This document shows positions 20,641 through 63,096 of a stretch of 64,000 bases of DNA, piece by piece. Within the stretch, counting starts at the first letter, position 1. Each line of letters opens with the position of its first letter. The DNA is taken from the NCBI GenBank assembly GCA_051294905.1, contig CM119381.1, positions 11,160,001 through 11,224,000 of the forward strand, given 5' to 3'. Under the pieces are notes generated by a model, which was given only the letters and a program-made list of their open reading frames with translations, did no database searches and was not told the origin of the DNA. This DNA comes from Botryllus schlosseri (lineage: Eukaryota). Position numbers and translations under genes: made by a program.

Positions 20641-20939
20641 TCAGCCTCGGCGTGATGACCGCGTTCTGCTTCGTGACTGCGTTTTGTCTTTTGACTGCGT
20701 TTTGTCTTCTGACTGCGCTGGTGTTTTCCTTTTCCCGGCAGGTTTTGAAAACATCGAACCCCTTTTCGACGATGATTTGCCATCGTCATCCTTATCATCT
20801 TTGCGGCGAGACGATGACGTTGAACGACTGCCTGTTCCGCTTGTGCGAGATGACGAGCTTGAGCGACTGCCTGTTCTGCGAGACCCGAATCTTCCATATC
20901 TTGAAGAGCGAGAGGATGTCTTTGACGCGCCAATGGTAC
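20641..20939 (-). CDS. Putative terminal exon: Ser/Arg-rich basic tail
   Basis: Acceptor ttgttttacag, phase 1. Reads [32 protein letters not shown]...KDDKDDDGK...[17 protein letters not shown] lies about 150 nt downstream (plus-strand tttatt near 20490). Confidence 0.65.
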
Positions 20940-62900: not shown

Positions 62901-63096
62901 TCGTTGATGAGTATTTTCGTCGTTTCTGGTTCTTTGATTGTAGCTTTGCTGGGAAATTGCAGTGAAACGTAAAATGTTTCGATCCCTTCCAAAACCGGCT
63001 TCTCGTTGTCGTCGAGAATATGGATGGTCACTGGAACTTCTCGTTGCTCCGCAGCAAACTCAATCAGTTTTTCAACTGGTTTAAAATCTTCATTTT
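20641..63096 (-). CDS. Giant secreted-type multidomain ECM/mucin-related protein (Calx-beta, VWD-C8-TIL, VWA, EGF, WxxW); 5' part outside the window
   Basis: About 82 GT-AG exons whose phases chain without a break from 63096 to TGA at 20641 (about 12.7 kb coding, about 4,240 codons by hand count). Two paralogous units have identical exon sizes. Confidence 0.88.
21851..23177 (+). mobile_element. 5'-truncated LINE (CR1/L2-like), antisense in the last intron
   Basis: Starts at QGSVLGP. RT C-terminal ORF followed by a 3' UTR ending aataaaagaa(ct)n. Confidence 0.9.
21861..22763 (+). CDS. LINE reverse transcriptase C-terminal fragment (300 aa)
   Basis: [36 protein letters not shown]. Open to its stop codon, with no 5' part. 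Confidence 0.85.
   Translation: MLGPLLFIIFINDIVYSSPGNITLFADDTSIVTSGFDYASAIDNTNSELACVSNWVSSNKLHINPLKTKILVFDSKGSLNNAIAEFKLKDSLIKTSQSVKYLGIIIDDNLVWDHHINYIASKISRGIGALYRLKKLVPISLLLPVYHALVHCHLTYGITVWGCSYKKHINKLQVLQNKAIRIISNIPARSSVSPEFRKLGILKVSDLYEFEIVKIMKQYNEGTLPEYFDNFFQCPNSIHHYNTRFSQNQSLFVKLNSSRLSRNSLSYIGVKFWNNVPTFCRTLPYHTFKARYCKLILSKY
23976..24272 (-). CDS. Exon: RGD plus C-terminal WxxW (mucin/CILP-type) domain
   Basis: 297 nt, phase 1-1. [20 protein letters not shown]...SGDRE...[10 protein letters not shown]...[12 protein letters not shown]. Confidence 0.85.
24662..24681. repeat. (TA)n microsatellite
   Basis: About 10 TA units. Confidence 0.8.
24838..24995 (-). mobile_element. tRNA-derived SINE, same family as 9160-9423
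   Basis: Reverse complement has B box ggttcgatccc followed by ccgggtaggaccaaagac...cctgctgaccgctcagcatcaccgggatagcatgg. Confidence 0.75.
25751..26326 (-). CDS. Exon: VWA domain 3 of unit 1 (intact MIDAS)
   Basis: 576 nt. [25 protein letters not shown]. Confidence 0.92.
27529..27642 (-). CDS. Exon: EGF-like domain
   Basis: 114 nt, phase 1-1. [14 protein letters not shown]...[16 protein letters not shown]. Confidence 0.92.
28060..31282 (-). CDS. VWA domain 2 of unit 1 (3 exons)
   Basis: Exons 31047-31282, 29863-30054, 28060-28210. [26 protein letters not shown]. Confidence 0.9.
28273..29854. mobile_element. hAT MITE (1582 bp) with ATTACA subterminal arrays, inserted at a splice donor
   Basis: TIRs cagagttggatcaatt / aattgatccaactctg. 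8-bp TSD atacgcac at 28265-28272 and 29855-29862. Confidence 0.92.
31344..31457 (-). CDS. Exon: EGF-like domain
   Basis: 114 nt. [37 protein letters not shown]. Confidence 0.92.
31783..32848 (-). CDS. Linker microexon plus VWA domain 1 of unit 1
   Basis: Exons 32822-32848, 32339-32472, 31979-32281, 31783-31912. [21 protein letters not shown]. Confidence 0.9.
32911..34553 (-). CDS. C8-TIL-TILa, unit 1 second set
   Basis: Exons 34409-34553, 33296-33456, 33116-33237, 32911-33057. [27 protein letters not shown]. Confidence 0.9.
34616..36156 (-). CDS. VWD domain with GDPH, unit 1
   Basis: Exons 36017-36156, 35310-35420, 35097-35249, 34616-34782. [13 protein letters not shown]...FMGKCNY...GLCSDFDGN. 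Confidence 0.92.
36433..38410 (-). CDS. C8-TIL-TILa, unit 1 first set
   Basis: Exons 38260-38410, 37575-37701, 37402-37515, 36631-36722, 36433-36574. [18 protein letters not shown]. Confidence 0.9.
38511..39327 (-). CDS. Linker microexon plus VWD domain lacking GDPH, unit 1
   Basis: Exons 39304-39327, 39097-39239, 38900-39004, 38667-38838, 38511-38607. [14 protein letters not shown]...GLCGNNN. Confidence 0.9.
39386..41098 (-). CDS. Two Calx-beta domains (FRAS1/FREM-like)
   Basis: Exons 40892-41098, 40633-40782, 39971-40120, 39386-39595. [17 protein letters not shown]...[30 protein letters not shown]. Confidence 0.88.
39736..39787 (+). mobile_element. Extreme 3' tail fragment of the LINE at 21851-23177
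   Basis: tactatatttcacggttgacaaataaaagaat(tc)n matches 23135-23177. Confidence 0.7.
41568..41639 (-). CDS. Acidic linker exon between the two units
   Basis: 72 nt, phase 1-1. [24 protein letters not shown]. Acceptor ttctacag, donor gtgggt. Confidence 0.65.
41714..50280 (-). CDS. Array of nine WxxW (mucin/CILP-type) repeats, two exons each
   Basis: 88- or 94-nt exons ([19 protein letters not shown]) paired with 191-nt exons (KENP..IC..P.KI.ARL...[20 protein letters not shown]). The 191-nt exons start at 41714, 42568, 43424, 44201, 45822, 46676, 47532, 48309 and 49930. Confidence 0.92.
41807..50044. repeat. Near-identical tandem duplication, unit length 4108 bp
   Basis: ORF pairs are offset by exactly 4108 (42060/46168, 42560/46668, 43410/47518, 44193/48301, 45450/49558). 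Introns are included. Only about a dozen substitutions were seen by eye. Confidence 0.95.
50649..51224 (-). CDS. Exon: VWA domain 3 of unit 2 (degenerate MIDAS)
   Basis: 576 nt, paralog of 25751-26326. [21 protein letters not shown]. Confidence 0.9.
51285..51398 (-). CDS. Exon: EGF-like domain
   Basis: 114 nt. [14 protein letters not shown]...[16 protein letters not shown]. Confidence 0.92.
52200..53731 (-). CDS. VWA domain 2 of unit 2 (3 exons)
   Basis: Exons 53496-53731, 52408-52599, 52200-52350. Confidence 0.9.
54179..54292 (-). CDS. Exon: EGF-like domain
   Basis: 114 nt. [37 protein letters not shown]. Confidence 0.92.
54449..55782 (-). CDS. Linker microexon plus VWA domain 1 of unit 2
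   Basis: Exons 55762-55782, 55535-55668, 54640-54942, 54449-54578. Confidence 0.9.
55843..57342 (-). CDS. C8-TIL-TILa, unit 2 second set
   Basis: Exons 57198-57342, 56783-56943, 56602-56723, 55843-55989. Confidence 0.9.
56276..56528. mobile_element. Foldback (almost fully palindromic) MITE, intronic
   Basis: Arms of about 120 bp (attgaatagtatattcatattgaaa...ctgacactcgtcagggg...caacaatcgtatctc) pair with their reverse complement around a loop of about 13 nt. Confidence 0.85.
57402..59040 (-). CDS. VWD domain with GDPH, unit 2
   Basis: Exons 58901-59040, 58168-58278, 57866-58018, 57402-57568. Confidence 0.92.
59350..61019 (-). CDS. C8-TIL-TILa, unit 2 first set
   Basis: Exons 60869-61019, 60539-60665, 60370-60483, 59548-59639, 59350-59491. 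Confidence 0.9.
61663..62827 (-). CDS. Linker microexon plus VWD domain lacking GDPH, unit 2
   Basis: Exons 62804-62827, 62593-62735, 62377-62481, 61821-61992, 61663-61759. Confidence 0.9.
62887..63096 (-). CDS. Exon: C-terminal half of a Calx-beta domain, unit 2
   Basis: 210 nt, paralog of 39386-39595. [44 protein letters not shown]. Confidence 0.9.

Follow-up and report, generated by a model that had tools for sequence, protein, structure and literature searches.

Sponge aggregation factors, such as MAFp3/p4 of Clathria prolifera and AqAFA-E of Amphimedon queenslandica, carry Calx-beta domains in front of VWD or VWA domains, with layouts such as signal peptide (SP)-13x Calx-beta-VWD-Wreath and SP-2x Calx-beta-6x VWA-Wreath. 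The Wreath domain, reported to be VWD-like by structure prediction, defines these factors and has been found only in demosponges. Tunicates are known for many multi-VWD proteins, 17 of them in Ciona, so that a mosaic multi-VWD gene is in itself a known kind of thing; in Ciona, Ci-GFM1 keeps the canonical order D1-D2-D'D3...D4-VWC-CK. FCGBP proper is defined by the FCGBP_N domain, which is confined to cephalochordates and vertebrates (PMC4948705). Here, a locus of Botryllus schlosseri is described from a window of 64,000 nucleotides (C11:11,160,001-11,224,000; the assembly searched has 495,547,953 bp in 219 contigs), in which the span 20641-63096 on the minus strand is real and intact and probably constitutes the C-terminal end of a single very large gene, whose product would be a secreted protein of the extracellular matrix.

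Dynamic programming over GT/AG sites was used to build the exon chain, with stop-free segments and a paralogous copy within the locus as guides, and the result was corrected by hand where the two paralogous copies disagreed. All coding sequence of the gene lies on the minus strand, and the full model consists of 81 exons with 4,408 codons and not a single in-frame stop, separated by introns which are GT-AG in 80 of 80 cases (median length 241 nt, minimum 55 nt). Position 63096 is the start of model exon 3 and 20641 the end of the stop codon, with 78 exons encoding about 4,239 residues in between. Hence, the phase-consistent chain which a first-pass annotation had proposed with exactly these limits is reproduced by the splice-site model without internal stop. 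Likewise, every module family named there was confirmed by Pfam scans of single exons (E-values in Table 1, in addition to 1e-07 for C8 and 4e-07 for TILa; TIL was also matched). The Ser/Arg tail proved to be real as well, with 29 Ser, 17 Arg and 11 Lys among its 99 cysteine-free residues (pI 11.9) and no Pfam family matched. The RGD tripeptide is indeed present once, at residue 4215 of the model, but with 1.1 occurrences expected from composition this is chance level, and its interpretation as an integrin site was rejected.

For the continuation beyond the window, 160 kb of upstream DNA was fetched and numbered by extending the window coordinates past 64000 (extended coordinates). Open segments on the minus strand were labelled with local profiles seeded from Pfam-verified exons, resulting in 304 domain matches, all on this strand and in orderly succession, and Pfam spot checks were positive for Lectin_C, EGF, VWD, EGF_CA, Calx-beta, WxxW and TILa. 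What had been taken for a self-contained protein of about 4,200 residues thus makes up only the C-terminal end, apparently about a quarter, of a much longer chain: following the suggestion to extend past 64000 for a signal peptide and more units, the same phase-1 chain was found to run about 130 kb further upstream to a leader, with about 70 Calx-beta domains in total upstream of the window. Among the unit junctions and the 5' end searched, the sole convincing signal peptide is that at about 193.7 kb. From 149.9 to 62.8 kb, the splice chain comprises 185 exon segments with about 11,900 codons, a sum slightly inflated by in-frame mini-introns; 176 of these segments have phase 1-1. This chain has two breaks, one of which fits a 62-nt GC-AG intron, and the other was attributed to overlapping segments sorted in the wrong order. 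Taking together the window part, the upstream chain and the N-terminal block, whose length is roughly estimated at 2,800 residues, the whole predicted product is perhaps on the order of 19,000 residues, with its leader about 173 kb from the stop codon. At the first of the two breaks (143.1 kb), a pseudogene lesion was also considered and rejected in favour of the GC-AG intron; in this Calx-beta array intron (extended ~143,150-143,090, C11 ~11,303,100) the donor seems to be GC (GAAG, followed by GCACAA) where paralogous repeats have GT.

The seemingly odd mosaic of modules results largely from internal duplication. Positions 63102-50693 (unit A, upstream) are colinear exon by exon with 39601-25795 (unit B, downstream) at 68-91% identity (blastn), both units showing the order Calx-beta, Calx-beta, VWD-C8-TIL-TILa, VWD(GDPH)-C8-TIL-TILa, VWA, EGF, VWA, EGF, VWA. 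Thirty exons have the same lengths in the two units, 1,651 codons align gap-free with 78% amino-acid identity, and 82 of 82 cysteines are in the same positions. Judged from the codon alignment (pN 0.128; pS 0.69, with synonymous sites saturated; Ka/Ks about 0.07), the tandem duplication is old and both copies have been kept under strong constraint. The most diverged block between the units is the third VWA domain (56% identity, pN 0.27), which in unit A has lost the metal-site motifs, reading ESSGS, GGRRIS and ITVG versus DSSGS, GGTKTG and ITDG in unit B. The MIDAS motif DSSGS is found in five of the six VWA domains, including all three of unit B. In VWA3 of unit A, this loss together with the fast evolution suggests a division of labour between the copies. 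Units A and B each carry the GDPH motif in their second VWD, and so does the first of the VWD domains further upstream. Duplication is also seen in the WxxW array, where a tandem duplication of 4,108 bp (41700-45807 and 45808-49915; 99.3% identical overall) adds four of the nine domains, its mismatches clustering at one end with only about 11 in 4 kb elsewhere, and in an upstream array of Calx-beta pairs with 17 copies of 1,092 bp that are 98-100% identical.

Table 1. Features of the matrix gene in 5' to 3' order of the minus strand. Positions are window coordinates, continued upstream past 64000 where marked as extended.
Feature	Position	Strand	Evidence
ATG in Kozak context; with a 66-nt mini-intron encodes a hydrophobic leader, phase-compatible with C-type lectin exon	~193,670 extended (C11 ~11,353,670)	-	
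C-type lectin domain (CTLD)	193.4 and 184.2 kb extended	-	
Two EGF domains	~183 kb extended	-	
Four D assemblies with interspersed VWA (four) and EGF/TILa (several) modules; GDPH in first VWD	182.7-153 kb extended	-	
Two WxxW domains	149 kb extended	-	
About 21 Calx-beta domains	148.6-121 kb extended	-	
About 69 EGF domains, mostly calcium-binding	120-96 kb extended	-	
About 50 Calx-beta domains	95-63 kb extended	-	Contains the 17 x 1,092-bp array
Unit A onward	from 63 kb	-	
Unit A, Calx-beta 1 and N-terminal half of Calx-beta 2	64044-65240 extended (beyond window end)	-	
Unit A, C-terminal half of Calx-beta 2, one exon	62887-63096	-	Pfam Calx-beta 6.5e-08; exon model; paralogue of 39386-39595
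Unit A, D assembly 1 (VWD-C8-TIL-TILa), nine exons, without GDPH	59350-62735	-	Pfam VWD, C8, TIL; exon model
Unit A, D assembly 2 (VWD-C8-TIL-TILa), eight exons, GDPH from nt 59017	55843-59040	-	Pfam VWD 2.3e-11; GDPH is model residue 628
Unit A, VWA-EGF block	50649-55668	-	Local profiles seeded from Pfam-verified unit B exons; translations; DxSxS scan
Modules of this block: VWA1, EGF, VWA2, EGF, VWA3	55668-54449, 54292-54179, 53731-52200, 51398-51285, 51224-50649	-	
Nine Mucin2_WxxW (CysD-type) domains, two exons each	41714-50280	-	Pfam PF13330 4.4e-17; exon model
Linker exon, 72 nt, phase 1-1, acidic peptide	41568-41639	-	Sequence read directly; chain open across
Unit B, two Calx-beta domains, four exons	39386-41098	-	Pfam Calx-beta 4.2e-09; exon model
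Unit B, D assemblies 1 (39239-36433) and 2 (36156-32911, GDPH from nt 36133)	32911-39239	-	Pfam C8, TIL, TILa; blastn colinear with unit A, 70-91%; GDPH is residue 3187
Unit B, VWA-EGF block	25751-32472	-	Pfam VWA 8e-38, EGF 2.9e-10
Modules of this block: VWA1, EGF, VWA2, EGF, VWA3	32472-31783, 31457-31344, 31282-28060, 27642-27529, 26326-25751	-	
Last Mucin2_WxxW domain, single exon, degenerate WxxW motif (WTGY), sole RGD	23976-24272	-	Pfam PF13330 1.5e-15; weak match to Mucin-5AC chain (8ov0)
Reverse transcriptase fragment, non-LTR type, within the last intron (3,036 nt) and outside the protein	21849-22760	+	Pfam RVT_1 1.2e-11
Terminal exon, 99-residue basic tail and stop codon (20643-20641)	20641-20939	-	Phase-1 acceptor, stop; composition
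AATAAA polyadenylation signal, ~146 nt past the stop codon	20490-20495	-	Pattern search

Mini-introns that are in frame occur at several places in the gene with lengths of 55-66 nt, the unspliced open reading frame (ORF) reading through them. Those in VWA1 of unit B, of 57 nt (32282-32338) and 66 nt (31913-31978), are in frame and stop-free, in-frame stretches of about 57 nt are also present in the array of 1,092-bp Calx repeats, such as near extended 73,850, and one mini-intron bears a perfect TACTAAC branch-site motif. The same state is kept in a related species, as seen in a fragment from Logan (P0165); an origin of this fragment from RNA was rejected, since it retains the mini-intron and hence derives from DNA. 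Besides, copies of an element of about 100 nt, 82-83% identical, are found in introns of the two units that are not homologous to each other (56422-56528, 26349-26454 and 25634-25698), probably representing a small interspersed repeat. Another interspersed repeat of about 350 bp, with at least 40 copies at 70-78% identity on many chromosomes, lies at 63450-63820 in the intron upstream of the exon starting at 63096.

Only 615 nt lie between the end of the WxxW array of unit A and the opening Calx-beta exon of unit B, and in this gap sits a 72-nt phase 1-1 exon whose splice sites are good. Between 41720 and 41090, neither an AATAAA nor a signal-peptide-like ORF was found, so that unit B would have no start and no secretion route of its own. 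There is also no room in the gap for a promoter and a first exon, and the sole terminal exon with stop codon and polyadenylation signal sits at the 3' end. Based on this gene structure, one transcription unit across the window appears quite likely, and for the whole 173 kb we lean, with less assurance, towards one gene as well. Alternatively, two or more tandem paralogous genes (unit A plus WxxW block, unit B and possibly the upstream D block as a third) might have been chained due to their shared phase 1, a reading to which we assign a minor but real chance. Unit B ends with VWA-WxxW-tail-stop, WxxW also terminates unit A and the upstream block, and a WxxW block could mark the end of an ancestral gene; moreover, sponge aggregation-factor genes of similar syntax are tightly packed tandem genes, just 29-1,489 bp apart. 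At the WxxW-to-Calx junction at about 149.0 kb, read-through stops after 17 codons and an AATAAA follows 330 nt further, making a shorter isoform or a gene boundary possible there. However, the one signal-peptide-like ORF of this junction, at 148759, was rejected as a second signal peptide, as it is a translated acceptor polypyrimidine tract ending in a stop, and the sole convincing leader found is the one at the far 5' end.

Besides the 149.0-kb junction, several points weigh against a single large and active gene. Exons with symmetric phase 1 can by their very nature be joined into a chain even over the borders between adjacent genes, the exon borders are heuristic, stemming from a splice-site search guided by the paralogue and not from cDNA, and the N-terminal 44 kb is domain-labelled only, without an exon-by-exon model. 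Assembly could have inflated the two near-identical arrays, with repeats of 4.1 kb and 1,092 bp, and all functional statements are deduced from domain families. In four bulk RNA runs, of which 6-13% each was read, 0, 0, 2 and 0 reads without joints were counted on 38301-44300, applying a threshold of 95% identity and no control that reads of the organism pass it, hence these counts are uninformative and not evidence of silence. A search with words of 31000-40900 gave no matching run on record as RNA, and two runs from 2015, guessed to be RNA, hold only 12-13% of the sampled words, which is a hint only.

Such near-zero read counts could be expected of a silent or decaying relic, and the two near-identical arrays are of the type that assemblers mishandle, so that the structure might in part have been made by assembly (collapsed or inflated repeats); published haplotype assemblies of Botryllus schlosseri are said to hold misassemblies (PMC12448946). 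Nevertheless, a relic or artefact is considered improbable. The reading frame is open over all 81 exons of the model and across the upstream chain, the low Ka/Ks between the units goes along with retention of every cysteine, and orthologous pieces are open in related species, including the Calx repeat. A wrong repeat copy number, furthermore, would leave the reality of the gene untouched.

Regarding these relatives, an exhaustive HMMER search with the VWA3 exon yielded 8,452 VWA proteins, among them one close relative, a Logan fragment of 170 residues with 72-73% identity. This fragment stems from a 6.5-kb contig of another species (L022), which matches unit B colinearly over the stretch from C8 to VWA3, with 66-88% of the amino acids identical. 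As this contig is mostly nearer to unit B than to unit A, the A/B duplication predates the split of that species. In three samples of a relative, contigs of 1,113 bp carry a sequence that is 83% identical to the Calx pair of the 1,092-bp array. Word-indexed protein searches, in which exon-sized queries cannot reach long proteins, returned only two Logan fragments (P0147 and P0165), with no match to the junction Calx exon. Among the VWA proteins, the best long relatives checked are collagen VI/XII-like, SVEP1-like, SEA-EGF or VWA-only proteins, none of them with the architecture of the Botryllus gene, and the closest PDB relatives of VWA3 from unit B are collagen VI alpha-3, mussel PTMP1 and the A domains of VWF. 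In the full texts searched, no work uniting Calx-beta, VWD, VWA and TIL was found, nor anything on VWFL in the endostyle. The initial impression of an unrecognised architecture is therefore sustained, as neither the literature searched nor the architectures of the best VWA relatives revealed a characterised family with the same domain order. A lineage-specific polymerising scaffold, as proposed in the first-pass annotation, is a fair reading, with close relatives seen only as contigs from related species.

From its domains, the product would be a secreted protein in which the D assemblies form intermolecular disulfides and thus multimers, as in VWF, mucins and FCGBP. The GDPH motifs would self-cleave in the late secretory pathway, the fragments staying disulfide-linked, similar to FCGBP, for which secretion with cleaved GDPH sites and disulfide-held fragments is reported (PMC8267560). 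Those VWA domains in which the MIDAS is retained, resembling matrix-binding domains of collagen VI, PTMP1 and VWF, may bind matrix ligands, and the basic tail might attach to polyanions, i.e., sulfated or acidic polymers. Calx-beta and calcium-binding EGF (cbEGF) arrays bind calcium and form stiff rods, and the ones predicted here could be loaded with calcium in sea water and serve as long stiff spacers. CysD domains mediate non-covalent cross-links; those of the Botryllus protein, resembling the CysD of MUC5AC, might accordingly engage in reversible homotypic cross-linking. All this would add up to a cross-linked fibre or gel that is stiffened by calcium, and tunic, adhesive, mucus net or egg coat can be guessed as its tissue.

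If the single gene holds true, its product would be among the largest secreted matrix proteins predicted in any chordate, and a giant matrix protein would have grown by nested tandem duplication at three time scales, represented by the ancient and constrained super-module of 1,651 codons, the roughly 99.7%-identical 4.1-kb block of four CysD domains and the 17-copy array of Calx-beta pairs. It would provide a concrete candidate for the calcium-stiffened fibre or gel of tunic, adhesive or mucus net, and a chordate comparison for a Calx-beta/VWD/VWA syntax whose discussion has until now been confined to sponge aggregation factors. In case of several genes, or of genes not expressed, an ordinary cluster of lineage-specific multi-VWD genes would be left. 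Going further, the single 173-kb gene with its roughly 19,000 residues might be a functional counterpart of the sponge aggregation factors, i.e., a calcium-dependent polyvalent scaffold for adhesion and recognition in a colonial animal which fuses with or rejects its neighbours. This analogy-based reading is highly speculative and has little chance of being correct; if it were, the near-identical coding arrays could vary in copy number from one individual to the next.

An intronless ORF of 1,039 codons (14711-17830, minus strand) closely follows the giant gene on its downstream side. Its predicted product begins with an acidic part resembling a coiled coil and has several hydrophobic segments that probably span the membrane; the ORF matched no Pfam family at 1e-4 and is a separate gene. 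At 3413-6721 on the plus strand, a 1,102-codon ORF with DUF1759 is consistent with a BEL/Pao element. Other clusters of Mucin2_WxxW exons are located at C11:10,040,000-10,122,000 (plus strand), just 1.1 Mb from the giant gene, at C2:2.03-2.05 Mb and at C3:18.60-18.62 Mb, and may belong to related genes.

In comparison with described systems, it is most improbable that the Botryllus gene is the ordinary orthologue of a known family, be it gel-forming mucin/VWF, FCGBP, FRAS1/FREM, matrilin or fibrillin. It does have modules in common with all of these: mucins share its D assemblies and CysD, FCGBP the GDPH motif, FREM the Calx-beta domains, matrilins the VWA-EGF combination and fibrillin the cbEGF arrays. 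However, genome-wide profile searches put the defining modules elsewhere, with none in C11:11.18-11.36 Mb. The initial FRAS1/FREM-, matrilin- and FCGBP-type labels are thus appropriate at the level of domains, whereas defining features of FRAS/FREM, mucin/VWF and matrilin turned out to be absent on test. With FRAS1/FREM, as well as ADGRV1, the extracellular Calx-beta array is shared, and most Calx-beta matches of the genome lie in this locus, but the CSPG repeats, which in FRAS/FREM precede the Calx-beta domains on the N-terminal side, do not: the 30 genome matches to CSPG (Cadherin_3, PF16184) are on C9, C12, C15, C16 and C17. Those on C15 and C16 adjoin other Calx-beta matches and are candidate FRAS/FREM loci. 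Different from FRAS1/FREM, no membrane-spanning segment is evident in the modelled part of the Botryllus protein, for which no formal test was made.

VWF and gel-forming mucins resemble the Botryllus protein in the D assemblies near the N-terminus, here a predicted one with four of the type VWD-C8-TIL-TILa following CTLD-EGF-EGF, in CysD, which weakly matches a Mucin-5AC chain (8ov0), and, in the case of VWF, in VWA. Their C-terminal cystine knot and central PTS (Pro-, Thr- and Ser-rich) region, on the other hand, are missing here. Matches to Cys_knot (PF00007) are found on C2, C14 and distant parts of C11 and none in the locus, no stretch of the 4,408 modelled residues represents a PTS region (Ser, Thr and Pro amount to 18%, with seven N-glycosylation sequons), and no VWC was seen. 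The canonical order of Ci-GFM1 is not shared by the Botryllus gene. With FCGBP, zonadhesin and alpha-tectorin, it has in common the tandem VWD-C8-TIL-TILa, the GDPH in some VWD domains and the lack of a C-terminal cystine knot; yet the Botryllus protein consists mostly of Calx-beta, EGF and VWA domains, and MAM, NIDO and ZP modules were not seen, albeit no search was aimed at them. The VWA-EGF-VWA arrangement is like that of matrilins, the N-terminal domains of collagen VI and mussel PTMP1, but a coiled coil (no heptad region was found after the VWA block) or a collagen segment is lacking, and WxxW and the basic tail follow instead. Fibrillin is similar in the run of about 69 cbEGF domains and in enormous size, but its TB domains, with genome matches only at C4:30.2 Mb, are not in the locus, and the EGF array held no unlabelled Cys-rich ORFs resembling coding sequence. 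A long EGF array and enormous size are also shared with Dumpy, the giant EGF-array matrix protein of Drosophila; ZP and DPY modules are not known from the Botryllus gene.

The nearest architectural analogue found is the sponge aggregation factor. Compared to it, the Botryllus gene is three to five times larger and adds C8-TIL-TILa, cbEGF arrays, CysD/WxxW and a C-type lectin domain, and its C-terminus is formed by WxxW and the basic tail versus Wreath in the sponge proteins. Common to both are modular exons and variation in domain number, and a calcium-dependent extracellular scaffold, predicted in the case of Botryllus, would be a further parallel. Above all, both follow the syntax of a signal peptide and a long Calx-beta array, then VWD and/or VWA, which in Botryllus occurs twice downstream of one leader as [Calx-beta]n, two VWD-C8-TIL and three VWA. 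Judged by this domain order, the resemblance to the sponge aggregation factors is one of syntax, which shows neither homology nor orthology.

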